This document shows, one piece after another, positions 1,959-33,504 of a stretch of DNA of 33,786 nt; the stretch's first letter is position 1; every line of letters begins with the position of its first letter. A model generated the notes under the pieces. The model had not been told where the DNA came from. It did not search any database and was given only the letters and a program-made list of their open reading frames with translations. The DNA comes from Octopus bimaculoides (taxonomy: Eukaryota), in the NCBI RefSeq assembly GCF_001194135.2, contig NC_068981.1:10699050-10732835 (forward strand), written 5' to 3'. The position numbers and the translations under genes were made by a program.

Positions 1959-2364
1959 TTAAAATTCCATATCATAAACCACAATTCCTGATGACTGATA
2001 ACCTATTTGTTCATGGACACTAATAGAAAGAATATTTTCTGGTTGAATTTTGACACTTGGCGTTATTCCTGCTTCAATAAACTTAGCTGATAACATAGAG
2101 ATCACCGCTTTTGTGCAGCCTCGTCCGCGATAATTAGCATTGACATGTAGATATCCGATTGTTCCACTATCGGTCCCCAATCCATAAGCAACTACTTTCT
2201 CAATGGAATTACACAAACACACATTTGGGAACGTGTTTATAAGTACATTGATATATTCCTTAGTACTGTCCACTTGGTCGGTAGAAGATTGTTCCCAGGT
2301 GTCTGCGATATCGTCCAAATGTTCTGTGGTAAGGACTCCTATGTCTAGATTAGTTGGTGCTACA
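1959..2364 (-). CDS. Glycine N-acyltransferase-like (GNAT) gene, terminal exon
   Basis: Acceptor ttttcttttgcag|T. Encodes VAPTNLDIGVLTTEHLDDIADTW...GTIGYLHVNANYRGRGCTKAV...ENILSISVHEQIGY...EF*. YRGRG acetyl-CoA motif and GLYAT/FR47-like C-terminal domain; AATAAA about 15 nt after the stop. Confidence 0.85.
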
Positions 2365-3195
2365 CTGCAAAAGAAAAGACTTGAGCATTAATGATACTTC
2401 CATTATGATCTTCGTTACTTTACAATTATCATCAATGAATATCTCATTAGAATTTATAATTATCATGAATGAGTATCCCGTTAAAAATGACAGTAAAATA
2501 AGAAATATTCGCATTAGGAGACAACTAACACCTTCACAAGGGGTTTACGCACATACTAACACCTTCACAATGTCTAAGGTGTGTTTATTTGAGAAATGAT
2601 TTGACTTGCTATTTTATGTCACACCTGAAACAATTACGTCGATGAGGAGTGATGAACACATGCATAAACAAGGTTGTGTGGCTGTAGGTGTGTTTGTGTG
2701 GTTGTTAGTTTAGCCGGCTCTGGTTGAATACAGGGTTTGCTTAGTCGCGAATCTCTCATGTAGGGGTTCCAAGTTCCACATCGTGGTACAGTGCCTCAGT
2801 TGACGGACTGGAGCACATGATGGTCTGGTGCTGACACTGCATCACTGGACGAGCTATGGCAACGGCCAGGGCGGAGGAGTCCCAATGAGACCAACAACCA
2901 AGTGTCCGTAACTGGATGCGACCCGCACTATACTTCTTCGACATCGGCTAGCAGTCAAAAGAGACAGCTCCACTTACAGTGTCTTTCATAAATGCAAGTG
3001 CTTGGGCTTCAGGTTAGCACCCTGTCCACCGTAGAAATCTCATACTATGAAAATAGTTCAAAGTGGAAACTCTGACTACCACATGTGCCTCCCGACCTTG
3101 GGGCACCTAAGTCTAAAGTCTTAATCACAGGTAGTTCTGTGTTGTTTAAAAGCTAATTAGAAAAACAATACAATTACATTGTTTCTTTCTTTAGG

Positions 3196-3244
3196 TAGAA
3201 GACCAGCAGCAGCAGCAGAAGCAGCAGCAGCAGAAGCAGCAGCA
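3196..3244. repeat. (AGC)n-rich microsatellite
   Basis: agcagcagcagcagaagcagcagcagcagaagcagcagca. Confidence 0.85.
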
Positions 3245-3371
3245 TATAACTTTCGAATAAGCTGACTTCATTTTAAAGCGTATTGATGCCCGTTTAAACT
3301 GACAATGGTTATATGCAAATATTTCTTCTCCCAAAGGAATCAAATGAAATCAAAGTATAATTTTTATTTAC

Positions 3372-3489
3372 CTGCTTTGAAGGGAATTTTCGTCTAAATG
3401 ATACAAGTTGTACATGTCGCATTTTTTAACGCATTTGTCTTTAGATTTCATGTATTCTTCTACAACACTTTTTCTTTCAGAGAGAATGG
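3372..3489 (-). CDS. GLYAT-like gene, internal exon
   Basis: (TC)n polypyrimidine tract, cag acceptor and gtaaat donor. 118 nt, phase 1/2, open (ILSERKSVVEEYMKSKDKCVKKCDMYNLYHLDENSLQS); joins the 2364 exon in frame. Confidence 0.8.
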
Positions 3490-3610
3490 CTGAATTGAGA
3501 GAGAGAGAGAGAGGAGAAAAGGTGACATCGCATTAGTAATTCTACATTTCTCTCCTTTCGCGATAAATAGTTACAGTATATGATATAATACTATACACAC
3601 ACACATATAA

Positions 3611-4862
3611 ACGAGAGGGTGCTGAAAGGTTCCTGGATTTAAGGGTAACGCGAAAAGGTAGAGCTGTTACCTTCACAGGAGAAGAAGGTTAATTGTTAAG
3701 GAGAAGATATGCAAAAAATCATGATGGTATACTATATATTTTACTTATTTTTGCAGATTTAACGCATGATTGCAGCTCCCACAGTGCATTTTGGTAATAC
3801 TGAAGCACATCCGGTTATGAAGTTCTTCTTTTTGTAAAGCAAAGGAGCTGCGGAAATCCATGGCGAGATAAAGGAAATTTTGAAAGATGACCGCCCATCT
3901 TACGCCACAGTAAAAATCTGAGTGTCAATGTTTCGGACTGGTCATTTCGAGGCCACTAGATGAATCCCGGTCAGGACGATCAACTTCCTTGACTACGGAG
4001 AACAAAGCCGACTCTGTACACGTCATCATTCTCGAGGACCACCGGATTTCAGCTGAGACTATGGGAATTTTCTGCGAAAGAATTGACCACATCATCCACA
4101 AAATTCTGGACATGTGAAAGCTTTCAACAAAATGGGTGCCGAAATGCCTGGACGCAGATCAGACGCGCTTTAGAGTGACGACATCAAAGGCGATTCTGAT
4201 TTTATGGCTAGTTTAATCACCCTGGATGAAACCCGGTTTCATCATTGTGACCCTCAGACTAAGCAGCAATCAATGGAGGGGCGAAACAGCGGTTCAACGT
4301 GTCTCAAGAAGTTTCTGACCCAGAAGCTAGCTGAAAAGTTTCTGGCTTTAGTGTTCTGGGAGAAAGACGGAATACTCCTCATAAAATACATACCAAATGG
4401 TGGTACCATCAATGCAGAATACCACATGTCTCTTTTGGACGAACTGTGTGATGCTTTGAAACAGAAACACTGAACTGTGGTGTTTTCCTTCTTCAGGACA
4501 ATGCACCAGCAGGCATAACACATGAAGCTCTACGGAAAATACGCGATTTAGGATTCGAACCGGTAGACCACACGCTTCACTCTGACTCTGACTTGGCCCC
4601 CTCTGACTATTACCACTTTCCTACTGAAAAAAAAACATCTCAATGAAACGAAATTTCACTCTGATTCGGAAGTCATCGCTGCTACAGAGGCCTGGTTGGA
4701 CACCCAATCTACCGACTTCTTTTGACAGGGTTTAGTAAAATTGAAGGAGCGTTGCAAGAAGTGTGTGAATTTGAGAAGGGAATCTGTTGAACAAAATCGT
4801 AATTAATTGATTGTCCTGTCTTTTCTTTCACACAAAACCAGGAACTTTTCAACACCCCTCGG
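3611..4862 (+). mobile_element. Full-length decayed mariner (DD34D) transposon
   Basis: ~26 bp TIRs (cgagagggtgctgaaaggttcctgg ... ccaggaacttttcaacacccctcg), about 1.25 kb. Motifs KWVPK, ITLDETRFHHCDPQTKQQSME, LQDNAP, SDLAPSDYYHF; multiple stops and frameshifts. Confidence 0.92.
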
Positions 4863-4954
4863 ATGTAATACATATAATGTATTATTTAATACATATACCA
4901 CGTACTTTAGTTTAATATAATACTTACATAGTGTACGCTATATATATATATATT

Positions 4955-5122
4955 CTTTTACTCTTTTACTTGTTTCAGTCATTTGACTGCGGCCATGCTG
5001 GAACACCGCCTTTAGTCGAGCAAATCGACCCCGGGACTTATTCTTTGTAAACCTGGTACTTATTCTATCGATTTCTTTTGCCGAACCGCTAAGTTACGGG
5101 GACATAAACACACCAGCATTGG
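4955..5122 (-). mobile_element. SINE family B (CORE-type), 3' part, truncated by a gap
   Basis: tgactgcggccatgctgg..accgcctttagtcgagcaaatcgacc; same as 18705-19108. Confidence 0.85.
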
Positions 5123-5487
5123 NNNNNNNNNNNNNNNNNNNNNNNNNNNNNNNNNNNNNNNNNNNNNNNNNNNNNNNNNNNNNNNNNNNNNNNNNNNNNN
5201 NNNNNNNNNNNNNNNNNNNNNNNNNNNNNNNNNNNNNNNNNNNNNNNNNNNNNNNNNNNNNNNNNNNNNNNNNNNNNNNNNNNNNNNNNNNNNNNNNNNN
5301 NNNNNNNNNNNNNNNNNNNNNNNNNNNNNNNNNNNNNNNNNNNNNNNNNNNNNNNATATATATTTATTTATACATACATGTATCATAATTTGACTTAGCT
5401 ACATGTTACTCAAAGTTCCGTGGTGTAGGACACAGCTACAAAGCTTTCATCAACAAGGACTTGTGTGAAGTTGCTATTAAAAGCTGA

Positions 5488-5592
5488 AAGGTAAAGTTGA
5501 GTTCCGTGAAATTTGAACTCTCAATGTAAAGGGCCGGAACACTGCGAAACCATTTTACGAAGGTCATAGAATTTTGTAAACGCAGTGCCCTT
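5488..5592 (-). mobile_element. Degraded SINE family A head
   Basis: gaaaggtaaagttgagttccgtgaaatttgaactc resembles gaaaggcaaagtcgacctcggcggaatttgaactc. Confidence 0.55.
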
Positions 5593-5751
5593 GTGATTAC
5601 GTTAATATTGAAAAACAAAAATCATTTCATATCTAGAGGTGCCCCCATCGATACTCAGACAAAAATTGTAATTTTAGATACTATAGTAATTTTGTGAGAT
5701 AATTTCCTGAAATAAAGTAACCTTATTAAAAACTATATTAAATACGGTGAG

Positions 5752-6115
5752 TCAATCAATCAATCAATCCATCCGTCTATCTTCTCCGCACACTACTCCT
5801 GGGAATGTCGTGGGGATAGAATCCTTAAGCAACTCTTCTATCAGAAGAACCCGTCATTACACTTTCCCGTTGAATTCCCAAGCTTGACCAACTGAGACCA
5901 TGATCAACCTCCAGATCTCGCGCCGGTTGGCTCATTTGACATTGTAATCACGTGTCCCTGATACCAGAGTTGTGACCTCTTAAAGTGGAGAAGTAGCGGC
6001 TCCATTTAGATAGAGTCCCTGATCTCAGAGTTACGAACCCAGTTGAGTAACGTTACTCCTGAAATCCTTTCGAGGCCGCTTGTGTTCACGATCATACACT
6101 TTCGGTCATTAACTC
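5752..6115 (-). mobile_element. RTE-clade LINE 3' end, degraded
   Basis: Minus translation LERISGVTLLNWVRNSEIRDSI*MEPLLLHFKRSQLWYQGHVITM matches the RTE ORF2 C-terminus (VRSSEIR..EPLLL..RSQLRW.GHV). Ends in a GGAT/GATT repeat tail. Confidence 0.75.
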
Positions 6116-6845
6116 AGTATTTATTCACTAGTGATGGGAAGCAGGGGACTGAATTGGTTTGATATTTAATAGCATGAATTATAATAATTCAATTAAATAT
6201 ATTAAATTCCATCAGTTATCATCTTCATCAGATCTAACAGTGAGGTCTGACAGAAGGTATTCCACTTACGACCATCCCACCTTTTGTTGAACTTGTATGA
6301 CTACATCGACAAATGAATCCTCACCTTATTTTAAATGGTAGAGATATTTATTCACTTGCTATTTCTAGCAGGTCGAGCAAACACTTAGAAGCTTCTTTGT
6401 TACTTGCAACTAAAACTCAAAAACTATATATAAAGAACTGGGAAATTGTGACGTCCATGACTTCCAAAGTGATAAAAGTGACACTAAATTCTTTTCAAAA
6501 ACAAACCAAAATCGAAACCGGATTGCAGTTTACACTTCGAAGTAACTTACCGTTTATTCTGTGACGTTCACCATAATTTTTTTAACAANNNNNNNNNNNN
6601 NNNNNNNNNNNNNNNNNNNNNNNNNNNNNNNNNNNNNNNNNNNNNNNNNNNNNNNNNNNNNNNNNNNNNNNNNNNNNNNNNNNNNNNNNNNNNNNNNNNN
6701 NNNNNNNNNNNNNNNNNNNNNNNNNNNNNNNNNNNNNNNNNNNNNNNNNNNNNNNNNNNNNNNNNNNNNNNNNNNNNNNNNNNNNNNNNNNNNNNNNNNN
6801 NNNNNNNNNNNNNNNNNNNNNNNNNNNNNNNNNNNNNNNNNNNNN

Positions 6846-7310: not shown

Positions 7311-7481
7311 ATGGGTAACCGACAGTCATCCGTACCGGTGAGACAACGTCACATGTCTGGTTCTGAGATTAGATCAGGAATTTCTTCCCTAAATGATATC
7401 ACAGGAAAAAACTATTATTTTGAAAATTTAGTTCTTGAAGGGAACAACGTAAAGAGCCTGGCTTATGTAGGGGCTTTAAAT
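7311..7481 (+). CDS. Patatin-like phospholipase-fold gene, coding exon 1
   Basis: cag|G ATG; MGNRQSS...YYFENLVLEGNNVKSLAYVGALN|gtaagt. Matches the patatin FENLVxEGGGxKGxAYVGAL N-terminal motif. Confidence 0.88.
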
Positions 7482-7920
7482 GTAAGTGATTTGCTTTTTC
7501 ATCTTCCATTTTGGTTACGAATAGTGTTTTTTTATTAACCATAAAGGTTGAAACACCGAGGGGACAGCACAAGAGGTGGGGTGGGGGGGGAATTCGCCAA
7601 CGAATGATAAACGGAATATTTACAAATTTATGATCAAAAGAATAAAAATAACGATGAGGGAGGGAAGGACGGATGTGACCCCACGAACAACATTCCACCA
7701 CTGGACCTTTTCAGTACTTTTGTCATCCTTTAAGTAGACACCTTCACTCTCAACACTTCTTCCACTTTCATTTTGGTTTCGAATGTGAGCAGACAGAAAC
7801 TTCACTTCGAAGTCACCGTCACCAGTCTTCTTGTAAAAGTATAATTATGTACTCTACGAAAAACTGAGTAATTCTTCAGTTTAAATGTAAAGTTGGTTTC
7901 TTTTAATGATATTTCGTCAT

Positions 7921-8125
7921 AAGGCGGTGATCTGACAGAATCTTTAGCATGCCGGGCAAAATGCTTAGTGGCATTTCGTCTGTCTTTACGTTCTGAGTCC
8001 AAATTCCACCGAGGTCGACTTTGTCTGTCATCCTTTCAGGGTCGATAAATTATGCACCAGTTGCGTGCTGGGGTCAATGTAATCGACTTGCCCCGCTACC
8101 CACCCAAATTTCGGGCCTTGTGTTT
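7921..8125 (+). mobile_element. SINE family A
   Basis: aaggcggtgatctgacagaatc...gagtccaaattcc..gtcgactttgtctgtcatcctttcagggtcgataaa. Confidence 0.8.
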
Positions 8126-8153
8126 AGAGTAGAAGACAATATTATCTCAACAT

Positions 8154-8365
8154 GAGGCGTCGAGCTGGCAGAATCGTTAGCTTGTCGGGCAAAATGCTTA
8201 GCGGCATTTCGTCCGTGTTTACGTTTTGAGTTCATTGCCATTGGGGCCGAATTTGCATTTCATCGTTTTGGGATCGATAAAATAAGACTCAGTTGAGAAT
8301 TGGGGTAGCTGTACTTGACTTAACCCCTCCCCTTGTATTGCTGGTCTTGTGCCAATTTTTGAAAC
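8154..8365 (+). mobile_element. SINE family A, tandem second copy
   Basis: gaggcgtcgagctggcagaatcgttagc...tttcatcgttttgggatcgataaaataagac. Confidence 0.8.
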
Positions 8366-8784
8366 CAATTACATAACACAATATAAGGCAGCGAGTTCGG
8401 AATATCGTAAAGGAGCTGGACAAAATGTTTGGCATTTTCCCCGAGTCTTTAAGTTCCAAGTTCAAATTCTGCAGAGGCCAATTATGCCATTCATTGTCTT
8501 CGAATTGATGAAATAAGTAACAGCCGACTACTAGGTTGGATTTAAATGACTGTCTGCTTCCCCTCAAAATTACTGGACTTATGTCGAAAGTAAAAAGAAT
8601 TGTGACTCGACATAAACATAAACCCAGTTCGTATGCGATTTCGCGCATTATCGTCGATTGTCACGACTCGATAAGTTTCAATTGCTTCCCATTATTTCTA
8701 CCCATCTAAAGGAATCAGTTCCTCATTAAATACTTTGAATTGACACTAATCTAAATTGCTCTACCTCCCTATTTTTATCAATAG

Positions 8785-8932
8785 GTGCTGGACAAAGTTG
8801 GAATCTTAGGGAAACTGAAAAGATTCGCTGGTGTAGGAACTAGTGGCGTCATAGTTTCTCTATTAGCTGCCGATTTTGATTGCGATACAGTCCAGAGTTT
8901 GCTGAACGAGCATATTGATAATTTACTATTTG
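8785..8932 (+). CDS. Patatin-like gene exon 2 (nucleophile-elbow region)
   Basis: atag|VLDKVGILGKLKRFAGVGTSGVIVSLLAADF...NLLF G|gtaag, phase 0/1; aligns to KRFAGTSAGAIxAxLLA. Confidence 0.88.
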
Positions 8933-9001
8933 GTAAGACTTTAAATCAAACATTTTTCTTCCCTGTTGAATTTCTATCTAATTTTACTGCGTTACTTCAT
9001 A

Positions 9002-9025
9002 TCTATATATATATAAATGAGAATG

Positions 9026-9060
<35 letters not shown>

Positions 9061-9356
9061 GTGAATCCCTAAAACTCGAGAACTACGCAACCAATTTTAT
9101 TCAAACTTTACACATGCCTTACTTAGGGTTCCAGTTGTGTTTTAGTCAAAAAAAAATTATTAACTTCTTGCAGAGTTCGAGCACACGGCAACATAATATC
9201 TCCTCCACTATTTAAGTATTACGTGTCAAAAGTGAAACAAAAACACTCATGTCAAATACTTTCACTTTAAAAATGAAACTATTCCACTAACTGAAACAAT
9301 CACATTTCGATACTGTAGTGACAGATACTTTCACAGAGAGAGAAAGAGAGAGACAG
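9002..9356 (+). mobile_element. Non-autonomous Helitron-like element, 5' part (runs into a gap)
   Basis: A|TCTATATATATATAAATGAG start followed by (GTCT)n, typical of Helitron-type non-autonomous elements; 3' end not visible. Confidence 0.55.
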
Positions 9357-10450
9357 NNNNNNNNNNNNNNNNNNNNNNNNNNNNNNNNNNNNNNNNNNNN
9401 NNNNNNNNNNNNNNNNNNNNNNNNNNNNNNNNNNNNNNNNNNNNNNNNNNNNNNNNNNNNNNNNNNNNNNNNNNNNNNNNNNNNNNNNNNNNNNNNNNNN
9501 NNNNNNNNNNNNNNNNNNNNNNNNNNNNNNNNNNNNNNNNNNNNNNNNNNNNNNNNNNNNNNNNNNNNNNNNNNNNNNNNNNNNNNNNNNNNNNNNNNNN
9601 NNNNNNNNNNNNNNNNNNNNNNNNNNNNNNNNNNNNNNNNNNNNNNNNNNNNNNNNNNNNNNNNNNNNNNNNNNNNNNNNNNNNNNNNNNNNNNNNNNNN
9701 NNNNNNNNNNNNNNNNNNNNNNNNNNNNNNNNNNNNNNNNNNNNNNNNNNNNNNNNNNNNNNNNNNNNNNNNNNNNNNNNNNNNNNNNNNNNNNNNNNNN
9801 NNNNNNNNNNNNNNNNNNNNNNNNNNNNNNNNNNNNNNNNNNNNNNNNNNNNNNNNNNNNNNNNNNNNNNNNNNNNNNNNNNNNNNNNNNNNNNNNNNNN
9901 NNNNNNNNNNNNNNNNNNNNNNNNNNNNNNNNNNNNNNNNNNNNNNNNNNNNNNNNNNNNNNNNNNNNNNNNNNNNNNNNNNNNNNNNNNNNNNNNNNNN
10001 NNNNNNNNNNNNNNNNNNNNNNNNNNNNNNNNNNNNNNNNNNNNNNNNNNNNNNNNNNNNNNNNNNNNNNNNNNNNNNNNNNNNNNNNNNNNNNNNNNNN
10101 NNNNNNNNNNNNNNNNNNNNNNNNNNNNNNNNNNNNNNNNNNNNNNNNNNNNNNNNNNNNNNNNNNNNNNNNNNNNNNNNNNNNNNNNNNNNNNNNNNNN
10201 NNNNNNNNNNNNNNNNNNNNNNNNNNNNNNNNNNNNNNNNNNNTGCTCAAGAGTGGGCAGCAACAAAAAACCTATTTGTATATGCTCCACAAGGGAAAAC
10301 AAGGAACATAGTTTACAATGAGGTGTTATAATCACAACAACAAGAAAGTATGTACATGATCACCTTCTTTTACGAAACTTCATTGACTTTCATATATTTA
10401 TATTGATATACATATATATACGTGTGTTTGGGTGCGTGTGTGTATATACA

Positions 10451-10541
10451 TCTCTATATATAAAGATGATGCGTAGTCTAGACGGCGTTTTTAGATTTCA
10501 TTATTCTCTTTCACCCGGGCAACGCCGGGTATTTCTGCTAG
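10451..10541 (+). mobile_element. 91-bp mini-Helitron
   Basis: 5' TC after A, GC hairpin cccgggc-aac-gccggg, 3' CTAG before T; inserted at A|T. Confidence 0.7.
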
Positions 10542-11171
10542 TATATTATAAAATAGGTGACGTCAATTTTAATACAATGAGTTATTTACTGAAAAATACT
10601 ATGCTTCAGTATAAAGTATTTATAAAGTATTTATATCCATGTATACAGGCGGAAACTTAAACCGAGTCGTGTGAGAGCAAAAGTTTCCTTGTTTCAGTTC
10701 TGTGCGATTTGAGTTTATGTTTAAACCGAGGACAAGTTTGTGTTTTACCATTTCGGAGCTGTAACAGTTACGCCCAGGAGTCGGTGTTTTATTCTCTCTC
10801 TTTGTCAGTCTTTCTATTTCTGATAAAAAAAAGTGTTTCTATCTAAAGGTAAATGTACTCCGCCAGGTTTAAAATCCCTTAACACATGCGGTATGTTACC
10901 GTATTGGCACCACGATTCTATTAGTCAGGAGAGGATCCAAGGCAAGGCATCCGTGTTCGTATGTTATGTATTTATTTTCAAGCGTTTAATCTGATGAATA
11001 GAATACCAAACCTCGTTTTTGTCTCAGTAGATTAACGTACACTTTTACCGCTAAATATTGCCGTGCTGGTATTTTTTCTGCGTTGAGTCTATTTTGCTAT
11101 ACACGGTTTATAAATATGAAATTTATTTGCATCTTAATCGAAAACTTATGAAGGCAGTTATTTCTCTTTAG

Positions 11172-11302
11172 ATAATCAATGTGCTGTACTTGCAAAGGAT
11201 GTGATGGAAAAGTTGGGTCGTAATTCGGGAAGGAAGTTTTTGGAATGGTTTGGCAACATCTTAAGGATTAAATGTGGCAATGCTGACATTACCTTCAAAC
11301 AG
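11172..11302 (+). CDS. Patatin-like gene exon 3
   Basis: ttag|(D)NQCAVLAKDVMEKLGRNSGRKFLEWFGNILRIKCGNADITFKQ|gtgag, phase 1/0; G.....WF..........DITFxQ family motif. Confidence 0.88.
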
Positions 11303-11418
11303 GTGAGTTTGATATTTTCGCCACAGGTTCTCTTCGTCGTTAGTGTTTAAAAGTGAGTTTGTGATAGCTGTGCATTCGGATGTTATATTCTCTAGGCATG
11401 ACTGTGTGGTACGATTGA

Positions 11419-11530
11419 ATCCCTCCATTTAAGCGCTCGCGCGCATTCCCATTCAGTCCCTCCACTTGAGCTCTCGTGCACACTCCGATGAAAATCCCTC
11501 CACTTTAGTGCTCGCGAGCACTCCGATTAA
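11419..11530. repeat. Three imperfect ~37-bp direct repeats, one with a 14-bp palindrome
   Basis: Each unit starts tccctcca(c/t)tt; gtgctcgcgagcac is a perfect palindrome. Confidence 0.7.
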
Positions 11531-12423
11531 AATCACTTTTCCATTCGCAAAATGTGCCCCTTTTAATTTTGTTTAGATGGCTTTCAATTTTGGTGTATCG
11601 ATACAACTGTGAATTTGATTAAGATCAACCAATTACTATATCTCAAATTAAAGAATCTGATGTTATTTTGAATTAAAGTTGGGAAATTTGGGTAATTTTA
11701 ACCAATCAACGGACAGCTAGGTGTTAACAGCTTGTTACCGTGACAACCGCACGTTGTGTTGTTTCACCCACATGTGTTGGCTCTTCACACCACCAGATTT
11801 ACTTCATCCGCGTCTTTTTTCTTTAATAAGAATTTATATTTATCAATTAGAATTATATTAAATTTTTCACCAATTGTCTTTATATTTTACATATTTTTCA
11901 TATATAGCAAAAATAGTTTGCGATGTTTACAGTTTCTTAGCATTATGAAGGTGAATGGAATATGTGAACTTAGTACAGATAATTTGACATCAGTTTTGAA
12001 TTCTGCATGCAAAAACAAGATGCAGGGATTCTTTTTCTTTGGACAAATTCTTTGTTGACCAGTGTTATTCTTATCGTAGTTTACATATCCAAGCATGAAA
12101 TCGTTACACAACTATGAAGTTTTGGAGACAGACGCCCATTTTCTCAACTGACTTACTGGCTGGCTGGGCTTCGCTAACTGGCTAAACTCAGCAGCCGTCT
12201 CGCTTGCTCACTCACGGCGTACAGAATATTGAAATACGCATAACTAAACACAATCATTGCGCAGACAAAAGAAACAATAAGATGATACCTGTTTATTTTA
12301 TAAAGTATTTCTGTTTATATAGAAACTTACAATGCGGTGGTCATTTCACAGACGCTGAAGTGTAAATTTCACAGGGTACAACCTTAAGTTGACACCGCTC
12401 CGCTAAGCGCAGAATGTTTCTTT

Positions 12424-12490
12424 AGGTTTAAAAATCTAAACTGTATTTTTAGCTAAAAGGCTAAAAATACAGTTGTAGATTTTTAAACCT
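12424..12490. repeat. 67-bp near-perfect inverted repeat (hairpin)
   Basis: aggtttaaaaatctaaactgtatttttagc-taaaag-gctaaaaatacagttgtagatttttaaacct; 30-bp stem with one bulged G. Confidence 0.9.
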
Positions 12491-12631
12491 TTTCTTCTCC
12501 AATTTTTTTCTCCACAACATCATAGCAATTAGCCTGGAAAGGTATATTATTATAGCCGATTTTCACATTATTTTACTGTCTTTTGAAAAATGCATTTTTT
12601 TTTTGCTAATGAAAAAAATGTAGATCCAAGA

Positions 12632-12970
12632 TCCCTCCACTTCAACGCACACTCGTGGCACCCCGGTTACGACGACGAGGGTTCCAGTTGATCCGATCAA
12701 CGGAACAGCCTACTCGTGAAATTAAGACAAATGTCCCCTTAACGTAGTTCTCGGAGATTCAGCGTGACACAGGTTTTGACAAAGCTGGCCCTTTGAAATA
12801 CAGGTACAACAAGAACAGGAAGTTGTGGTGAAAAAGTACAGCACGTTTCGCCACCATCCCCTGCCGGAGCCTCGTGGAGCTTTAGGTGTTGTCGCTCAAA
12901 CACTCTCAATGCCCTGTCTGGGAATTGAAACCGCGAGTCTGCTGTCCTAACCATAAGGCCATTGCTCCTC
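12632..12970 (-). mobile_element. tRNA-derived SINE family C
   Basis: Reverse-complement similarity to 31159-31543 (ggaacagcc..ctcgtgaaatta; gggaattgaaaccgcga B box). Confidence 0.8.
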
Positions 12971-18704: not shown

Positions 18705-18868
18705 ACTTGTTTCAGTCATTTGACTGCGGCCATGCTGAAGCACCGCCTTTAGTCGAGCAAATCGACCCCGGGACTTATTTTTGTAAGCCTAGTACTTATT
18801 CTATCGGTCTCTTTTTGCCGAGTGACGGACATAAACACACCAGCATCGGTTGTCAAGCAATGCTAGGA

Positions 18869-18933
<65 letters not shown>

Positions 18934-19108
18934 CGTATATACGACGGGCTTCTTTCAGTTTCCGTCTACCAAATCCACTCACAAGGCTTTGGTCGGCCCG
19001 AGGCTATAGTAGAAGACACTTGCCCAAGGTGCCACGCAGTGGGACTGAACCCGGAACCATGTGGTTGGTAAGCAAGCTACTTACCACACAGCCACTCCTG
19101 CGCCTATA
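18705..19108 (-). mobile_element. Full-length SINE family B (tRNA head, CORE-like domain, internal (GT)n)
   Basis: Reverse complement ggcgcaggagtggctgtgtggtaag...ggttcagtcccactgcgtggcaccttgggcaagtgtcttc...gatagaataagtac... Confidence 0.9.
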
Positions 19109-19286
19109 GCCACTCCTGCTCAGATTCTGTAAAACATTTTTTCGGATTCTTTTAAATCACTCGAAACACAAAATCAGGTTGTGCATATAATTTTAATTTT
19201 TCCTTCTAATAAGCTAACCTCTAATGATCTAATTAAATCTCTTTGTAAATTAATATTTCCCCAATCTGAAATTTCTTGGCAGACAA

Positions 19287-19367
19287 TTTAATGATGCTTC
19301 AGAGATATCGATGTTACAAATGGAAGTGTTTGAACGGTTTTCTGACAGCAATGAACAATTCTGCATG
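19287..19367 (+). CDS. Patatin-like gene exon 7 (acceptor uncertain)
   Basis: Open frame FNDASEISMLQMEVFERFSDSNEQFCM|gtaagt. The expected start at 19287 follows CAA, not AG; the nearest in-frame AG gives a start at 19305. Confidence 0.6.
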
Positions 19368-19797
19368 GTAAGTTGTGTACTTTTGTCGGGTGACTGGCAC
19401 GTTGCCTAACAGTAACTAGGATTAGTAGTTTCTACTGAGAAATTGTACTAGCAGTTAAGACAATCATAGTTATGTTTAAGCAAAGTGAAAGCTCCTAAAA
19501 TCATAATTTACTTGATCTAACAGATTAGTTTATGCATGCATCCATATTCTCACCCAAAATTTCCTTAAGGGTTATGAGGGTAGACTTCAGACCTCCCCCG
19601 TAAGGTCCTCTGAGAAACAACCTTCATTACACTTTGCGGCTGGATTCCCTATCGTTACAAAGATTATGGATATTAGCCAACCACCTTGTTCTTAGTTTAT
19701 CCCTTAGGTCTCTCATCGATTGGTTTTGCTTGGAAACTCCGTCTTGTAACTCCAGTCCGTTTTACCGGAGCTATGATCTCTCACTGCGGAGAAGTAG

Positions 19798-20024
19798 AGG
19801 CTCGATCTGGAGAAACTCCTTAATCTTGGAGCTACAAACCCAATGAGTAGTTACTCGGGTGGATTTGAACCGGAAGACAGTGTCAGAAGTGCTGATGGGC
19901 ACTTTGTTCGACGTACTGACGAATCTGTTAGGCAGCTACTTCATGTTTATAAGATCTTGCTGGATTATGCTTACACTCCGGAGGATAAAATTAGAGAGCA
20001 TTTCATTGCAGATCACTTTAAGAA
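19798..20024 (+). CDS. Probable patatin-like gene exon 8 (boundaries uncertain)
   Basis: Open frame ...MSSYSGGFEPEDSVRSADGHFVRRTDESVRQLLHVYKILLDYAYTPEDKIREHFIADHFK. Possible donors after 19944 (phase 0) or 20024 (phase 2), each compatible with one exon-9 acceptor. Confidence 0.4.
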
Positions 20025-20210
20025 GTCTGTCCAAATCTGTTTTCATATATTTTAATACACTACAACGAATGGTCTCTTTTGATCAAAATCCTTTGCAACA
20101 TATTTTAAAACTGAATTAAGAATAGATTTCAGATTTTAAGTAACTGTAGCTTCCATAAAATTACATACATGCTATTGGCTATAATACAAATGGCAGCCAT
20201 TTTGTTGCAG

Positions 20211-20282
20211 TTGTTGGACAGCTTGAAAGATTGCGATGATGCTGTGGAAATAAATTCATTGGCAAAAGTATTAAGCAGCAAT
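20211..20282 (+). CDS. Patatin-like gene exon 9
   Basis: ttttgttgcag|LLDSLKDCDDAVEINSLAKVLSSN|gtaagt; alternative acceptor starts at 20222. Confidence 0.65.
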
Positions 20283-20429
20283 GTAAGTAAAACCATTAGA
20301 TTCGTCTTTCTTTACTCATCCCTGCAGTATATAATATTTTGACTTGGTTGTGATGTAATAGTTGCATGTTAGAATCATATGGAATTAAATCTGATCAGCT
20401 GCGAAGTTCAACTATTTCCGAAAGCCGTA

Positions 20430-20690
20430 GACTGCACTGCTGAAGGATCGCTCACCGACACTCGTCAAGCATTAGTCTTACTTCCTGTCAGTCCTGCACC
20501 AGCATGTGATGTACTGAATGTTGCATGTCCCTTATACTTACTGTCCTTATTATCTTAACTGTCTAACTATGCACCGAACCGTTTTGCAAAAGTTGCAGCA
20601 TGTTTCTCCACTCATCTTAAGAATACAGCTAATGTTCAGTTTCATGCTTTATCACAAGCTTGGACAGACGTAAAATGTTCACTGAAATTG
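20430..20690 (-). mobile_element. Possible highly degraded Tigger N-terminal (HTH) remnant
   Basis: Minus frames give MKLNI..GET and MLVQD*QEVRL, loosely like Tigger MKLDI..GE and WIEDQ.QRR; many stops. Confidence 0.25.
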
Positions 20691-21685
20691 TCAAATTAGA
20701 AGTAAAAATCGGTAATTTGACGCAAAAGCTCTGTTTGTCTATCAAACTTCATTGACGGCATTAATCAACTTGACGATGGAATTGACTATTGACGAAGGTG
20801 CGGCACAATGGGTTCGCAATCGTAAGGTCATAGTTACTAAGCGAACCTTTTTATGCACACAGCCGCCATGCCCGCGTCTATATCACTGATATTTTACAAT
20901 AACACGCAATGTGTGACTCTCCGGTCAAGCAGATGGAGAGAAGGGTAAAACAAGAAACGGAGTGGGTGACTATCACAAACTCTGAAGGCAGGTGAATAGC
21001 ATTCAGATTTTTCTCTCGAGTCACTGGTATTTATGCTATAATAGAGAAAGCTGCTTATTAATTAGGCATGCAACAATTACTAAAAGTACTAAAAGAAAGC
21101 AATTATTACATGGTTGACCGTCTGGGAACATTTTTATAAATTCATGTTCTAAGAAATTTCCTGTAATTTCGATTTCTGAAGTTTCTTGAATTTTTTAACT
21201 CCAATTTCTCGCAAATTTAAATATTCATGCATCCAATTCACAACTTTAAATATTCATTGCATTCACTGCGGAGTAATCCATTCTCATTTGCAGAGTCTTT
21301 CAAGTTCTCTTATAAGTTTTCATTCGCAATTTGGGAAACCGTCAGCTTATTCTATTAATGTATACGTAATTATTTATTGAATGAAAAAAATTTAAATACT
21401 CGTATAATTTTTGAACGCGGGATAGATGTGAGAAAAGCCTAGAAAATTGGGTAATTACTTTTAGACGAGGAGAAAAAGTTACCGAGAAGTACTCGAAACT
21501 TGCACGCTATTCAGTTTCCAAACACTCTGTACCACTAAGCCAATATATACACGAGTTGCACGAGCGACTTCAACATTGACATACTCGCGCGCGCACATAG
21601 ATACACTGACACACAAATGAAAGGCAATGAATGTGTGTTTGCTGTTCATTGACAAAACTTGGCGCTGCATTACTTCTGCGAAGTT

Positions 21686-21881
21686 TTTTGTCAGTGAACA
21701 GGTCACGGTTTCAAAGTGAAGAAAATAGTTTGAGACAAATGAATTTTTAATTGCAGCGTGGAGGGTGTTTATAAGCCATTTAGGAAACGCACAAAAGCCG
21801 TTAGATCCTCTTCAACATTTAAAATTTAATTTGCCAAAATATTTCCGTCGCTTTGAGATCGAGACCTGTTCACTGACAAAA
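21686..21881. mobile_element. MITE-like element with 31-bp inverted repeats
   Basis: ttttgtcagtgaacaggtcacggtttcaaag versus ctttgagatcgagacctgttcactgacaaaa (3 mismatches). Confidence 0.6.
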
Positions 21882-21889
21882 TTCCGTTG

Positions 21890-22400
21890 TGTGTGTTTGT
21901 GTGTGTGAAGTTGTATACATATATAGACGCACGCATATATATGTGTGTGTGTGCGTTTGTTCCTCTCACCCCGTCTATCAGTGAATGGATACGTCTTAGG
22001 TTATATATGCGCATGTAACCTTATACATATTTACAAGTACACACAATCATATAGACACCTACACGCTCTCAAAAATATACGTATAATCTTAAAGTACACA
22101 CACACTACGCTTATCCATCTCTCTCTACACACACACACATATATATATGACACCGTTTTCAATGACAACGGTTAAAATTCAAATTTGCTTTTATTTTACA
22201 CGCATACATATACAATACATACGTATATCTACACACTAATACTTGCATGCATGTACATACTCATACACTAACATACTCACGTATACACACATACATCTAC
22301 AGATACGTATATACGTATCAAACTATATACGCTCATACGGTTATATATAACGACATATATTTATTTTAGTATCATGCATCTCAATATGTATGTATGGATT
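21890..22400. repeat. Degenerate (GT)/(CA)/(TA) low-complexity region
   Basis: Seen directly. Confidence 0.75.
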
Positions 22401-22639
22401 TCCACATGTAAATGAGAGAGAAGGGTAGCTAAAGAGGGGTCCTCCCGAGTGGAATCTTGATGTTATCCCATTGGGATTTACGGTTGAGAGTGGGTTTGTA
22501 TTCCTGTATACAGACAGCTTCAGTGACTTGTCTCAGCANNNNNNNNNNTTACGGTTGAGAGTGGGTTTGTATTCCTGTATACAGACAGCTTCAGTGACTT
22601 GTCTCAGCATTGCATCACTGGGATGTGTGGATAAGATGT

Positions 22640-23075
22640 TTAACTTTAGGTTAGTCGCACAAGCACCTTCTTGGAACTTAATCTGCTATACAGTGCTCTT
22701 GGTTTTGCAGTTCACATGTGGCTTTGTAGAACATACTACACAATTATTTTGACACGTGATTCTATCAAATGGATATGATCTACATAATGCAGATTTGATA
22801 GTCCTACCTGTCTTTTCTACAACTTTGATCTTAATGCCAGTTGTACGCAGAATTTTCTTGAATGCCTTGCTTAATTCGTTGTTAGGTGTAGCGTCAACAA
22901 ACATAACACTGAAATTTCTTGTTATCATACCAAATATTGTTTTTATTTCTTTTGTTGGTGTCCTTCTCTAACCGATTCCTGAACTAGTTGCAGTATAGGA
23001 GGCATATATAGTTTTCGTCTCTTAGAATGCGTTCGAATCTTGTTTTCGCTCCTTTTTAATGTTGAAGTGAAACTG
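22640..23075 (-). mobile_element. Penelope-like retroelement fragment (RT thumb, Cys-rich linker, start of GIY-YIG region)
   Basis: SVMFVDATPNNELSK..ILRTTGIKIKVVEKTGRTIKSAL.RSYPF..C..NCVVC...NCKTKSTV*QIK matches the PLE VMFVPxTP...IKVVExxG...C..C..C....VxYxI pattern. Confidence 0.7.
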
Positions 23076-23994
23076 GTACTTCTTAAATACAGAGATCCCT
23101 TAACGGTACTACTTAAATACAGGTGTTGCATCCAAAATATTTTAAATGTACGTTGTGTGGACGTGTAATGACACGCTAACTAAGCCTAAAACTAGCCCTT
23201 CCCTTAACCCTAAAACTAATCTTCCCTTTCATATCGTTACGTAGATGCATCGGGACCTCCTTTATTTAAGTAGTTCCGTGAAAGTAACGGATTCTGTGTG
23301 TTCTTGAATGGCTTACAAACACCTCCGCTGCAACTTTTGTTTCAGCACACGATCTCTCATCAAGTCACTTGCTATGCAAGTACATCTCTGTGATGTTTTA
23401 AAATCACTGGATAAATGCCAGCAATGACCTTCTCAAGCTCTCCAATATTTTAATTTCTAAATAGAAACACGCGGGGTCTGGGAGTGAGGTTGCAAAAAAT
23501 TCATTATTTCTTAAATTTTCTTTTTTATAGCATATAAATGTATTTATGGGGAAGAATATTGAAAAACACCAATACATGCGAGAGTGATAAAGAAACGAGG
23601 AACGTTGTCTTTAGATATGCTAGAAACAACATCCAAATCGCCCTTAAATCACTCGCTTTTCCGTCTGAAAATATTAACAATTTAAAAAATTTACCGAAAA
23701 TTCTCTTCCTGTGGGTTTGCAGTACCAAGGAAAAAAAAATTGGCCAAAACAGGTCAGGAGTGGGATGAGGGCGGGGTGTGTGGAAAAAAAAGCGTTTACA
23801 AAACTTTTTTCAAAGGTGCTCCCCACTAACCCATCATTTCGAAAGAATTTTCCCCACAAATTACATGCACCAACTCACTCAATTTCGATTGACACCAAAC
23901 ACATCTCTAAAAACCGAGTTCTTGCGGATTCATTTTCCTGTCCAAATCAATCTCCCATTTTTTACTAGTTTCCTAAATGTCCTTTTTGTCTTAG

Positions 23995-24099
23995 GAATGT
24001 TTGAGTGCCACGGAAAAAGAAGTCCTGTTTGGAAATGCGATGATCAGTGAAGCTGAGTGCATTGAATTCTTAAATAAGATAAGTAATGGCAATGATATG
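23995..24099 (+). CDS. Patatin-like gene exon 10 (EF-hand-like insert)
   Basis: ttag|ECLSATEKEVLFGNAMISEAECIEFLNKISNGNDM|gtgagt, phase 0/0. Confidence 0.82.
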
Positions 24100-24194
24100 G
24101 TGAGTAACGTTCTATGACGTTGTAATCGATAACTTGTGTTTTGTAATCAATTCAAGTGTATGAGTTCAGTTGATTGGTGCAATTTCTTTTCAAG

Positions 24195-24347
24195 TTGGCC
24201 GTCTCAGATATGGAGAATCTCTTGGAGAGTAAAAACTGGGCGTTATATAGCCAATGCTTATGCAGTGAAAGGATTGAAATAACCAACCACTTTTGTTACT
24301 GGGGAGTTATAGCAAATGTTTTACACAGCGGTACCAGTAAAGTATTG
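24195..24347 (+). CDS. Patatin-like gene exon 11
   Basis: ttttcaag|LAVSDMENLLESKNWALYSQCLCSERIEITNHFCYWGVIANVLHSGTSKVL|gtaagt, phase 0/0. Confidence 0.82.
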
Positions 24348-24662
24348 GTAAGTAACGAGTCATAAATATAGTTCATTGTCACTTTAGCGTGAAGTCTCTC
24401 ACCTTAATTGTAACCCCGAATAAGTTATTTCATAGCTTTCATTGCGATAGACCTCTGCTTTAATTCTCGACGCTTATTTGCCGCAAGGATTAGTTTAGAG
24501 AGATCTACTTTATCATTTGTAGCGATTAAACATGAAAATATGACCAGGAATTGCTCTATGAAATAATGAGTGTTGAGACGGATCATCATCTGTTATGTCG
24601 GATTTGAATCATAAACTTACATTTACATAACTTAGAACTGTGTGTGTGTGTGTGTGTGTGTG

Positions 24663-24890
24663 TGGAGGTGCGTGACTTAGTGGTTAGGGCGTTGTTCCCC
24701 TGTTCGTAAGACTGTGGTTTCGATTGCTGGGCGATGCGTTGCGTCGTTGAACGAAACACTTAGCTCTACGTTGCTCGTCCAACAAAACTGAGTAATCCTG
24801 CGGTTGACCAGCGTCCTGTCCAAGAGGGGAATGTTACACCACAAAATCTGGGGAACTGGCCTTATGAGCCCTTGGCTTGGGAAGGACCTG
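24663..24890 (+). mobile_element. CORE-type tRNA-derived SINE, diverged
   Basis: ggaggtgcgtgacttagtggttaggg...gtttcgatt...aacacttagctctacgttgctc; follows (TG)n. Confidence 0.7.
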
Positions 24891-24977
24891 TGATCCCTAT
24901 TTTTTGTTTTTGATATATGTATGTATATGTATCGGTATGTGTATTTTAGGAACTTGTTTACTTAATTTTTCTTGCAG

Positions 24978-25073
24978 ATGGACAATTTTGAAAGGACTGT
25001 TGGTGTATACACTGGATATATCGACAACAGCGCACTTCATCTCGAAGAAGCTGATGAAAGTTATCTCTTTCAG
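24978..25073 (+). CDS. Patatin-like gene exon 12
   Basis: tttttcttgcag|MDNFERTVGVYTGYIDNSALHLEEADESYLFQ|gtgaat; RTxGIxTxYI...F.L...D..xL motif. Confidence 0.88.
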
Positions 25074-25181
25074 GTGAATATAAATTTCACAAATTTTATT
25101 TATTGCTTTTGACATTTATACACTGTCTAAATGCTTGAATTATTTTGTATATGTAATGTGTATATGATTATATATATATAG

Positions 25182-25229
25182 CAAGGATGGAACTGTACTG
25201 TGTCTTATCTGCGGCAACTTACCATGTGA
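25182..25229 (+). CDS. Patatin-like gene, terminal exon 13
   Basis: tag|QGWNCTVSYLRQLTM*; QG...T..FL patatin C-terminal helix; AATAAA at 25371. Confidence 0.85.
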   Translation, partial: QGWNCTVSYLRQLTM

Positions 25230-27560: not shown

Positions 27561-27669
27561 GTCTTGGCGTTGTTGTGCTAACGTTTCTGCCGGTTCGCTG
27601 TCTTGGCGTTGTTGTGCTAACGTTTCTGCCGGTTCGCTGTCTTGGCGTTGTTGTGCTAACGTTTCTGCC
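27535..27669. repeat. 39-bp tandem minisatellite built from the SINE 5' head
   Basis: tgtgctaacgtttctgccggttcgctgtcttggcgttgt repeated at least 3.5 times, running into a gap. Confidence 0.9.
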
Positions 27670-28610
27670 NNNNNNNNNNNNNNNNNNNNNNNNNNNNNNN
27701 NNNNNNNNNNNNNNNNNNNNNNNNNNNNNNNNNNNNNNNNNNNNNNNNNNNNNNNNNNNNNNNNNNNNNNNNNNNNNNNNNNNNNNNNNNNNNNNNNNNN
27801 NNNNNNNNNNNNNNNNNNNNNNNNNNNNNNNNNNNNNNNNNNNNNNNNNNNNNNNNNNNNNNNNNNNNNNNNNNNNNNNNNNNNNNNNNNNNNNNNNNNN
27901 NNNNNNNNNNNNNNNNNNNNNNNNNNNNNNNNNNNNNNNNNNNNNNNNNNNNNNNNNNNNNNNNNNNNNNNNNNNNNNNNNNNNNNNNNNNNNNNNNNNN
28001 NNNNNNNNNNNNNNNNNNNNNNNNNNNNNNNNNNNNNNNNNNNNNNNNNNNNNNNNNNNNNNNNNNNNNNNNNNNNNNNNNNNNNNNNNNNNNNNNNNNN
28101 NNNNNNNNNNNNNNNNNNNNNNNNNNNNNNNNNNNNNNNNNNNNNNNNNNNNNNNNNNNNNNNNNNNNNNNNNNNNNNNNNNNNNNNNNNNNNNNNNNNN
28201 NNNNNNNNNNNNNNNNNNNNNNNNNNNNNNNNNNNNNNNNNNNNNNNNNNNNNNNNNNNNNNNNNNNNNNNNNNNNNNNNNNNNNNNNNNNNNNNNNNNN
28301 NNNNNNNNNNNNNNNNNNNNNNNNNNNNNNNNNNNNNNNNNNNNNNNNNNNNNNNNNNNNNNNNNNNNNNNNNNNNNNNNNNNNNNNNNNNNNNNNNNNN
28401 NNNNNNNNNNNNNNNNNNNNNNNNNNNNNNNNNNNNNNNNNNNNNNNNNNNNNNNNNNNNNNNNNNNNNNNNNNNNNNNNNNNNNNNNNNNNNNNNNNNN
28501 NNNNNNNNNNNNNNNNNNNNNNNNNNNNNNNNNNNNNNNNNNNNNNNNNNNNNNNNNNNNNNNNNNNNNNNNNNNNNNNNNNNNNNNNNNNNNNNNNNNN
28601 NNNNNCCTGG

Positions 28611-28654
28611 GTCTTATCACTCTAGCCCGAAATGGCCTCTCGACTAGAAGCATT

Positions 28655-28708
<54 letters not shown>

Positions 28709-28755
28709 TCTCTTATCACTCTTATCACTCTTATCACTCTAGCTCGAAATGGCTA
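28611..28755. repeat. (CT)n microsatellite flanked by a direct repeat, plus three copies of tcttatcac
   Basis: tcttatcactctagc(c/t)cgaaatggc on both sides of (CT)n. Confidence 0.75.
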
Positions 28756-30545
28756 TCTATGTCTTTCTTTCTTTTCCCCCTGCATCACCAAACTTGTGTG
28801 TGTATGCATGTGTAATATAATCATATACACAAATGCAATTTCTGTCTTACCATCTTGCTGCCTACAGCAGTGAACCAGTCTTGACGAAACTTTATGTTAA
28901 ACTAACATCTAGTTCAGTTACAAGCTAATTGGATTTCAATAAAAATCTATAATGGCCCTCACTAGGCTAGTATTTGAGGGAGCAAGAGTGTTAGTGTGAG
29001 GGAAATGTGGTAGCATAGTGAGTGTGGCTGGTATCAAGGAAGGGGAGAACAACGTTGTGTAAGCGACATACGTAACTTTTAAAACGCCAAAGGGAAAGAA
29101 AGGCGGGTGTGAGGAATGTGATCACCTGTGTGTACGTTTGTAAATGTGTGTGTGTGAGACGTCCTATAACTGTCTGTCTATTTTTGTAGGGTCTTCCTTG
29201 TTGCTGTTACATTGTGAAATTCAGTTGCAAAAGATCTTGATTGTGTATAACGATTAAAAGTTTTTGAAAATCTTGCGTAGGCACTGAGCAGGTATCGCCA
29301 AGCTTTTGGCAAAATTTGATGCAGATTCTCTGCTCAATTTTTTGTCATGGTCAATGCGATGATCACATGCTACACACCTTCCTTCCAAGCACTGCTGTAA
29401 GCAACAGAAGTGAGCTAGAACGTTAAAATTTAGTGTGCATGCATAAGCAGAGTTCAAGGTTAATTTGCGCCAAGAGGCTTTGCTCTGCGGGATGTAGCTT
29501 TGTCCGAATACTTATTGATCAGACTACGTATATATATATAAGTATTATGTGAATGATGAAGGGGAAAATAGGAAAGCTTCTGACAATGCGGCAAGTTTCA
29601 CAAAACCTTTGTTTTTGGTGCAAAGGCCCATCCTCAGACGAAACAGTCTGGGAGATGTCTATTTATAGAGGTTCCGTTAACCCATCCAAATCCCTCAGCG
29701 TTATCTTAGCAGCAGAAGTCATCCTCCATATTCGTCTAACCGAAGCATTTATTCACAGTGAGTTCTTTTCTCGTATTAAACAGGAATCATGGCTAAAATC
29801 AATGTTTATTGAGCGATGAGTGAACAAACTACATTTCTAGAGACCACACTTTAGTGCCCACCTCACTAATCTCAGTAGACACTGAGTGCAGCAACAATTT
29901 CCTTGTGCAACTCTGTCTGCCACCAGATTTACAGATGTCACAGAATATTTCTGGTTGTGTCTGTTGCAGCTCGTGACTGTATAGACACATAAAACAATTA
30001 TCAAAAGCTGTGTTACCAAGTTATATTCGCTTGAGAGTGGCGGCAGCAGTACACTATTATAAAGTAAATGATTTTTATTAATTTCCTCCAAATATATTTA
30101 TACTTTGCTTTATCTTCATTCTGTTTCATACTTTTCATACATTAAACAATAATTTTAAAACAACTATTATTCTTCTACCAAATAAAATCAATTTTTATGA
30201 TCGTTTTATCGATCTCAGTAGAGTCATTATTGTTTCTGAATAGTTCAATGTTACATCGTTAAAACAAAACAAAACGTGACTACTTGTGCTTAACTCAACA
30301 CAAATGTAAACCAGGCTTTCAGGTTCAAACGCTCCTACAAACTAAACACAAAACTCTAGTTTTTAAAGGAGAGATAAGTGTGGATTTTTATAATTTTCGA
30401 ATTAGTTGTCTAACTTTTTCTTAGCTTGTAATTTGTAAATCATCGGCAAATAATAGGAATTACAACAGTCTGAAAGCTTTCTATATCCAGATCGCTATAA
30501 TTTAACATGATTTTGAAGATAAAATAATAGGAAACGGTTACTTAC

Positions 30546-30626
30546 TAATAGTGCCTTTTCTCCGTATTCGTTTAAGATCTTAATCAACTGTAATGTATCA
30601 GATTCATTTAACTGTAGGGGTGCCAT
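30546..30626 (-). CDS. GLYAT-like gene, probable first coding exon
   Basis: gccATGg context; MAPLQLNESDTLQLIKILNEYGEKALL|gtaagt, phase 0. Length and pattern resemble the GLYAT N-terminus (L.....L..L...L......SLK|V). Confidence 0.55.
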
Positions 30627-33490: not shown

Positions 33491-33504
33491 TAAACATACG
33501 AACA

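Follow-up and report, generated by a model that had tools for sequence, protein, structure and literature searches.

A patatin-like gene nested antisense in a 23-kb intron of a GLYAT-like gene in Octopus

The window analysed here is a 33,786-base stretch of the Octopus bimaculoides genome. Its reverse complement corresponds to positions 1841-35626 of locus L001 (GCA_001194135.2, CM046601.1), with 0 mismatches over 33,786 bases, and its edges are two large runs of N in CM046601.1. We consider it very probable that the window holds an ordinary host/nested gene pair: a five-exon GLYAT-like host gene on the minus strand (LOC106878188), whose 23-kb third intron contains the 13-exon coding region of a patatin-like gene on the plus strand (LOC106878189). 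Not only in O. bimaculoides but also in O. sinensis, a single host intron encloses the inner gene's entire coding region. The pair is already present in the public RefSeq annotation of both species, in which a 487-amino-acid patatin-domain product is called on the opposite strand within the range of the host gene. The literature library that was searched yielded no papers on LOC106878188 or LOC106878189, or on nested genes in O. bimaculoides. The comparison loci were L002 of O. sinensis (GCA_006345805.1, CM016859.1; PacBio-based, no N) and L003 of O. vulgaris (OX597814.1), and the outgroups comprised one decapodiform genome, that of Sepia (Acanthosepion) pharaonis, and three gastropods (Haliotis rufescens, Patella caerulea and Lottia gigantea). 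In window coordinates, the host gene is laid out as follows.

30546-30626, minus strand: host coding exon 1 (LOC106878188), MAPLQLNESDTLQLIKILNEYGEKALL, starting with ATG and followed by the donor gtaagt
27670-28605, no strand: run of N that most likely hides host exon 2, which is absent from the window by tblastn and placed here by projection from L002
26688-26796, minus strand: host exon 3 (the second one visible in the window), ITHISY...SSSIKFP plus one base, phase 1
3490-26687, minus strand: host intron of 23,198 bp, including 1,417 N, holding the whole patatin coding region on the other strand
3372-3489, minus strand: host exon 4, (A)ILSERKSVVEEYMKSKDK...ENSLQS, whose first two bases complete an Ala codon
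1959-2364, minus strand: terminal host exon 5, encoding a GNAT/FR47 domain (PF08445, 37 bits), with the stop codon at 1961-1959

The nesting hinges on the join across the long intron. The original prediction had placed a phase 1 end (G/gt) at 26688 and two spare bases at 3489, and both match the window sequence exactly. The exon at 26796-26688 is preceded by ...ctttag and ends ...TTTCCTG/gtgagt, that is, in phase 1, and the exon at 3489-3372 is preceded by ...aattcag and opens CC ATT CTC. The split codon formed by the join is Ala (G+CC), so that the reading is ...IVRSSSIKFP-A-ILSERKSVVEE.... At its 3' end, exon 4 (AG/gtaaat) joins the T at 2364 to give AGT (Ser), and the frame runs through the GNAT terminal exon to the stop, as had been claimed. 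Joined together, the four visible exons yield a 237-amino-acid open reading frame identical to RefSeq XP_014782813.2 (uncharacterized protein LOC106878188). Exon 1 gives a 93% tblastn match to residues 1-30 of the O. sinensis protein XP_036360206.1, with 27/27 exon-encoded residues identical. In O. sinensis, the host exons are found at 5001-5081, 31046-31168, 32620-32728, 56528-56645 and 57559-57966 of L002, and the equivalent intron measures about 23.8 kb (32729-56527).

The coding exons of the nested gene occupy the middle of this intron, on the opposite strand.

7311-7481, plus strand: patatin coding exon 1 (LOC106878189), beginning MGNRQSS..., with a degenerate oxyanion motif LEGNNVKSLAYVGA
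8785-8932, plus strand: patatin exon 2, in which GVGTSGV replaces the GxSxG nucleophile elbow
11172-11302, plus strand: patatin exon 3
14212-14347, plus strand: patatin exon 4
15367-15462, plus strand: patatin exon 5, retaining the catalytic Asp motif LDGG
17215-17339, plus strand: patatin exon 6
17927-18024, plus strand: patatin exon 7
19283-19367, plus strand: patatin exon 8
20211-20282, plus strand: patatin exon 9
23995-24099, plus strand: patatin exon 10
24195-24347, plus strand: patatin exon 11
24978-25073, plus strand: patatin exon 12
25182-25229, plus strand: patatin exon 13, with the stop codon; two AATAAA signals come next, at positions 25309 and 25371, with about 1.3 kb left to host exon 3

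These 13 exons (7311-25229, 1,464 nucleotides in total) have AG/GT borders throughout, and their translation is identical to XP_052834477.1 (uncharacterized protein LOC106878189) at 487/487 residues. Distant homologues served to anchor five of the first six exons, and the others were placed by a splice-graph dynamic programme that drew on codon bias, O. sinensis substitutions and the annotated length of the coding sequence. The first splice-graph run returned an over-fragmented model of 21-23 exons, and a higher exon penalty together with the annotated length brought it to 13. The introns in this region are 80-89% identical between O. bimaculoides and O. sinensis, and the exon conservation signal in tblastx and tblastn was blurred. 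Between the coding region and the host exons there remain 3.8 kb on the side of exon 4 and 1.46 kb on that of exon 3; the O. sinensis counterpart of the coding region runs from 34631 to 54750 of L002, again on the opposite strand and within the host intron. The proposal of an 18-kb, 13-exon patatin gene inside a roughly 23-kb intron is thus borne out by coordinates and RefSeq identity, and the RefSeq models of the two Octopus species match it. Because the AATAAA signals lie 80 and 142 nucleotides after the patatin stop, well before host exon 3, the patatin messenger RNA (mRNA) probably ends about 100 nucleotides past its stop, and no exon-exon antisense overlap would be expected between the mature transcripts.

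Might the gaps in the assembly conceal a different arrangement? The window contains 2,365 N in seven runs, six of which fall within the span of the finding, and none touches a visible exon of either gene. Window and L002 are collinear end to end. At the gaps 6589-6845, 9357-10243 and 16133-16162, the flanks continue in the same order and orientation in L002, where they are separated by 138, 916 and 11 bp, respectively. The gaps 5123-5355 and 22539-22548 sit within two blocks that are present only in O. bimaculoides (4479-6461, about 2.0 kb, and 21752-23104, about 1.35 kb), both bracketed by collinear sequence. For the gap 27670-28605, the counterpart in O. sinensis measures about 25 kb. The patatin proteins of O. 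sinensis and O. vulgaris align to the window protein without extra internal segments, and therefore no patatin exon should be hidden in the gaps. Over 13.9 kb, O. vulgaris L003 keeps the order of the O. sinensis locus at 97.8% identity, a stretch that includes the patatin 5' end beside host exons 4-5. The nesting is conserved in O. sinensis and, in part, in O. vulgaris.

The O. vulgaris chromosome OX597814.1 also displays a 5.3-kb block with host exons 4-5 twice (L003 6243-11507 and L004 6212-11503), at 98.6% identity and about 26 kb apart. Judged from the annotated patatin range, the block should carry the patatin 5' end as well, and there are no host exons 1-3 within 10 kb upstream of the second copy. 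Either a segmental duplication of recent date or a haplotype left uncollapsed would account for the doubling.

A search with the full-length O. sinensis host protein at a permissive E-value detected no second copies of GLYAT exons in the window or in L002, and the stretches from exon 3 to the patatin 3' end and from the patatin 5' end to exon 4 were free of exon relics. Each exon is single-copy at both loci, which agrees with the earlier report that alternative GLYAT exons are lacking at 25-26.6 kb and 3.5-7.3 kb. With no spare C- or N-terminal exons, and none in the gap-free L002 that the N runs of the window might have hidden, a pair of separate GLYAT paralogues is ruled out.

The protein family points the same way. 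In the 277-amino-acid O. sinensis protein, the domain PF06021 matches residues 7-189 as one stretch, and the junction at residues 103/104 falls inside it. An exhaustive HMMER search gathered 155 relatives, many of them 275-285 amino acids long, which align in one stretch over nearly the whole query without a gap at the junction; the Ala of the split codon aligns with a Gly/Ala column. Several of these relatives carry GLYAT-like names, in Haliotis and Lingula (so named by NCBI) as well as in Patella and Lottia. Among relatives with a genome, the closest is CAE1174811.1 of Sepia pharaonis, which shares the five-exon layout and whose intron interrupts the same codon in the same phase 1 (GAA TTT GTT G/gtaagg ... 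tttcag/GT ATA ACT). Moreover, an intron-free transcript contig of 1,587 bp (run SRR8281668) encodes, as one open reading frame, a 285-amino-acid relative that is about 90% identical to the Sepia pharaonis exons. Because PF06021 is unbroken, the homologues are gapless, the cuttlefish intron coincides, a relative's transcript joins both halves and the exons in L002 are single-copy, the exons on either side of the 23-kb intron are predicted to belong to one gene product.

Nesting and visible exons of the proposed host gene hold up, whereas its model lacked one conserved exon. XP_036360206.1 has 40 additional residues between exons 1 and 3, TKNIIQLSSPKPKNYLLEVWVDAWPNFNAVLVIYDWTVTE (TKNIIQ...TVTE), which include VDxWPxF, the best-conserved N-terminal motif of the family in an alignment of homologues. 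A tblastn search for this exon gave no match anywhere in the window. In L002 (31046-31168), 1,452 bp separate its end from exon 3 downstream. Its position there, 632-754 bp past the last aligned base, projects to about 28200-28330 of the window. Host exon 2 thus most likely sits in the assembly gap 27670-28605. Since this exon comprises 120 nucleotides, skipping it keeps the frame, which explains how the O. bimaculoides RefSeq model reads through without it; the 237-amino-acid XP_014782813.2 is most likely an in-frame, exon-skipped artefact of the gap. The hidden exon leaves the nesting intact. The distance from exon 1 to exon 3 is 3.7 kb in the window, including 936 N, and 25.3 kb of O. sinensis sequence (L002 6471-31800) matches 1,955 bp (27574-29529) of the window, which is about 23 kb shorter. 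Either the gap hides some 20 kb of repeats in O. bimaculoides or O. sinensis has gained them.

What are the two proteins? By its domains, the host appears to be a distant member of the GLYAT family and a putative N-acyltransferase. PF06021 (Gly_acyl_tr_N) scores 31.9 bits in the O. sinensis orthologue (cut-off 31.2) and gives no match in the 237-amino-acid product of the window, from which exon 2 is missing. The C-terminal FR47/GNAT domain PF08445 reaches 35-37 bits (cut-off 22.1), and PF08444 attains 17 bits, below its cut-off of 27, in the decapodiform relative only. With GLYAT and GLYATL acyl-CoA:amino acid N-acyltransferases, the host shares the two-domain layout of PF06021 and FR47/GNAT and a length of about 280 amino acids, but it is very distant from them, with 20-28% identity to non-cephalopod homologues and PF08444 not reached.

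The nested protein contains a patatin domain (PF01734, 51.6 bits, cut-off 27.7, residues 40-223). A protein search with the draft sequence gave relatives at 29-40% identity and not the Octopus proteins themselves. Outside Octopus, the nearest are metagenome 'NTE family' proteins of about 345 amino acids and a protein of amphioxus that has the MGN... N-terminus in common with the nested protein. Two of the three catalytic motifs are altered. In place of the oxyanion motif G-G-G-x-[KR]-G, the three Octopus species have EGNNVKS, compared with EGGGVKG in relatives and SGGGAKG in ExoU (window 7431-7451, exon 1). In place of G-x-S-x-G, they have G-V-G-T-S, compared with G-T-S-A-G or G-V-S-A-G in relatives and G-S-S-A-G in ExoU (8830-8850, exon 2): the serine column holds Gly in all three species, and a serine occurs two residues further on (GTSGV) without the closing Gly. 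The amphioxus and metagenome relatives keep both motifs. The catalytic Asp motif D-G-[AG] is present, YLDGGIICNYP aligning to VDGGV in relatives and to DGGV in ExoU. By the canonical Ser-Asp mechanism, the protein would be inactive or at least atypical, and it is likely a pseudoenzyme. The best solved-structure matches are ExoU and VipD. With patatin-like phospholipases of that type and with bacterial 'NTE family' members, it has PF01734, the motif order and the DGG aspartate in common, and it differs from them in GNNVKS, in GVGTS and in an additional C-terminal half of about 260 amino acids with inserted segments. Both the octopus and the amphioxus proteins begin MGN (window 7311-7330) and thus have the Gly2 that N-myristoylation requires; in the RefSeq model of O. 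sinensis, the protein starts 7 residues later and the MGN start is missing.

How old is the nesting? The orthologous intron of Sepia pharaonis spans 1,493 bp and is empty, and the octopus patatin protein finds no match in the 32.8-kb Sepia pharaonis locus. In Haliotis rufescens, Patella caerulea and Lottia gigantea, compact GLYAT-like genes of 2-7 kb are found, with tandem arrays in Haliotis and Lottia, and none of the three species has a patatin gene within 10 kb of them. Looked for in other molluscs, as had been proposed, the arrangement is present in the other octopuses and absent from the cuttlefish intron and the three gastropod loci. The nesting is seen only in Octopus and would have either arisen after the octopod-decapodiform split or been lost in the cuttlefish line. 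We envision that a DNA-level rearrangement brought the patatin gene into the intron in the octopod lineage, after its split from decapodiforms. With 12 introns within its coding region, an origin of the nested gene as a retrocopy is ruled out; because the inner gene has introns, its arrival would be by rearrangement of genomic DNA rather than by retroposition. Each gene would be transcribed from its own promoter, and the nesting would have no dedicated function, any interaction being of the generic kind, in which converging polymerases interfere with each other's transcription. In the comparison of O. bimaculoides with O. sinensis, the ratio of nonsynonymous to synonymous substitution rates (dN/dS) is 0.23 over 230 codons of the host and 0.34 over 467 codons of the nested gene; dS is about 0.09-0.10. 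Both genes look functional and, by these ratios, are under purifying selection. With so small a dS, little can be read into the persistence of the arrangement in these octopuses.

Several points weigh against this account. The word-indexed protein searches recovered only the known cluster and no Octopus transcript-derived protein with the N-terminal exons. UniProt, the O. vulgaris annotators and the O. bimaculoides annotation of 2015 have only a 149-161-amino-acid product, from exons 4-5. The decapodiform outgroup is a single genome, and its contig starts 382 bp upstream of exon 1, so that a patatin neighbour further upstream is possible there. Finally, the lack of a function for the nesting is itself suggested by a lack of conservation. 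Conceivably, exons 4-5 might form an independent GNAT gene of 161 amino acids, beginning at an internal Met (MKSKDK...), with exons 1-3 as a relic or a short gene and the patatin gene flanked rather than nested. Such a pair of transcription units would account for the 161 residues given by the O. vulgaris annotation and by UniProt A0A0L8GA32 and for the 149 of the 2015 RefSeq version, for the O. vulgaris block in which exons 4-5 are duplicated without exons 1-3, and for the protein search matches, among which no Octopus transcript-derived protein joins the halves. We nonetheless give it little credence. The short products start at the internal Met in exon 4 and would cut the single stretch of PF06021 in half, whereas phase 1 plus two bases yields an Ala at a Gly/Ala column, the cuttlefish intron interrupts the identical codon in the identical phase, a related mRNA contig joins both halves, each exon is single-copy in the gap-free O. 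sinensis locus, and the current RefSeq models of two species make the join. The 149-161-amino-acid products are probably truncated models. An error of scaffolding, by which an Illumina scaffold with seven N runs wrongly interleaved two loci, might seem plausible from the 2,365 N and from a gap that equals 25 kb in the sister species. It is nevertheless extremely improbable, because the PacBio-based, gap-free O. sinensis chromosome has the same exon order and orientation and is collinear across each gap, and O. vulgaris L003 is in turn collinear with O. sinensis.

A different question is whether the nested arrangement is put to use, through antisense interference, double-stranded RNA (dsRNA) or a linked N-acyl-lipid module. 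Its retention in three Octopus species, with both genes under purifying selection, and the transcriptional interference that nested genes can cause in other systems (PMC3192792) would favour such a use, which we regard as unlikely. The three octopuses are close relatives (dS about 0.09), and common ancestry is enough to explain the structure that they share; in the cuttlefish the intron is empty, and the gastropod loci are without a patatin neighbour; and the poly(A) signals 80-140 nucleotides after the patatin stop suggest that its exons do not overlap those of the host. Loss of GGGxKG and GxSxG argues against a role as lipase partner and thus weakens the idea of an acyltransferase-lipase module. 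On the same three grounds of cuttlefish, gastropods and lost catalytic motifs, the linked N-acyl-lipid module put forward in the original prediction is not supported, and its conservation as a module is unlikely. Interference between host and nested genes is documented in other systems (PMC3192792), and at this locus transcriptional interference or dsRNA is possible, as for any nested pair. None of the present results points beyond this general case or ties the two genes together in function. A more elaborate scenario, which we likewise think has a slim chance of being correct, would have an octopod rearrangement place a patatin-fold pseudoenzyme in a GLYAT-like gene and the antisense layout then serve mutually exclusive expression, via interference or via dsRNA feeding the very active RNA editing of cephalopods. 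The ordinary nested pair thus remains the reading that we prefer.

The window harbours several further elements. A remnant of a mariner-type transposase lies in the host intron at 3914-4722 on the plus strand (PF01359, 45 bits at 4174-4470, in several reading frames); below 4478 it is common to O. sinensis, and the adjoining block 4479-6461 has no counterpart there. The 1.35-kb block 21752-23104, located in patatin intron 9 and holding a 10-N gap, is likewise absent from O. sinensis; it contains a 93-amino-acid open reading frame on the minus strand (22967-22689) without a Pfam match. A dispersed repeat family occurs on both strands at 864-1213, 7906-8293 and 33466-33786 of the window and at 31364-31756 of L002, and yields pseudo-peptides that recur, among them DPERMKGKVDLGGI and RPRRNLNSER. 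The family is probably SINE-like (short interspersed element).

The wider biological weight of the pair is small, nested antisense genes being common and mostly a neutral by-product of long introns and genome rearrangement. In Drosophila, intronic genes make up about 6% of the total (PMC3786989); in vertebrates, 5-14% of genes take part in overlaps, most of which are lineage-specific or not conserved (PMC2151771). More immediate are the consequences for annotation: the O. bimaculoides host model would lack a conserved exon owing to an assembly gap, the 161-amino-acid products given by UniProt and by the O. vulgaris annotators are probably truncated, and lipase activity should not be taken for granted in the patatin-like protein of octopus. 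Because its cuttlefish counterpart is empty, the intron provides a clean, datable example of the origin of a nested pair, and could serve comparative work on genome rearrangement in cephalopods.

How does the pair compare with what is on record? The RefSeq entries LOC106878188 and LOC106878189, with LOC118764038 and LOC115232612 in O. sinensis, describe the same genes; the O. bimaculoides proteins agree with ours residue for residue, and the nesting is visible in the gene ranges. Both O. bimaculoides entries are named 'uncharacterized protein', and the host model is without the 40-amino-acid exon 2 present in the O. sinensis model. The closest parallels are 2mit in an intron of Drosophila timeless2 (PMC3786989) and the LRRTM genes in introns of alpha-catenin genes (PMC3933685). 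As in those cases, a complete gene with several exons and its own translation product occupies, in antisense orientation, an intron of a host to which it is unrelated, and the layout is confined to a lineage. The LRRTM/catenin nesting is conserved in most jawed vertebrates (PMC3933685), whereas the octopus pair is seen only within Octopus.

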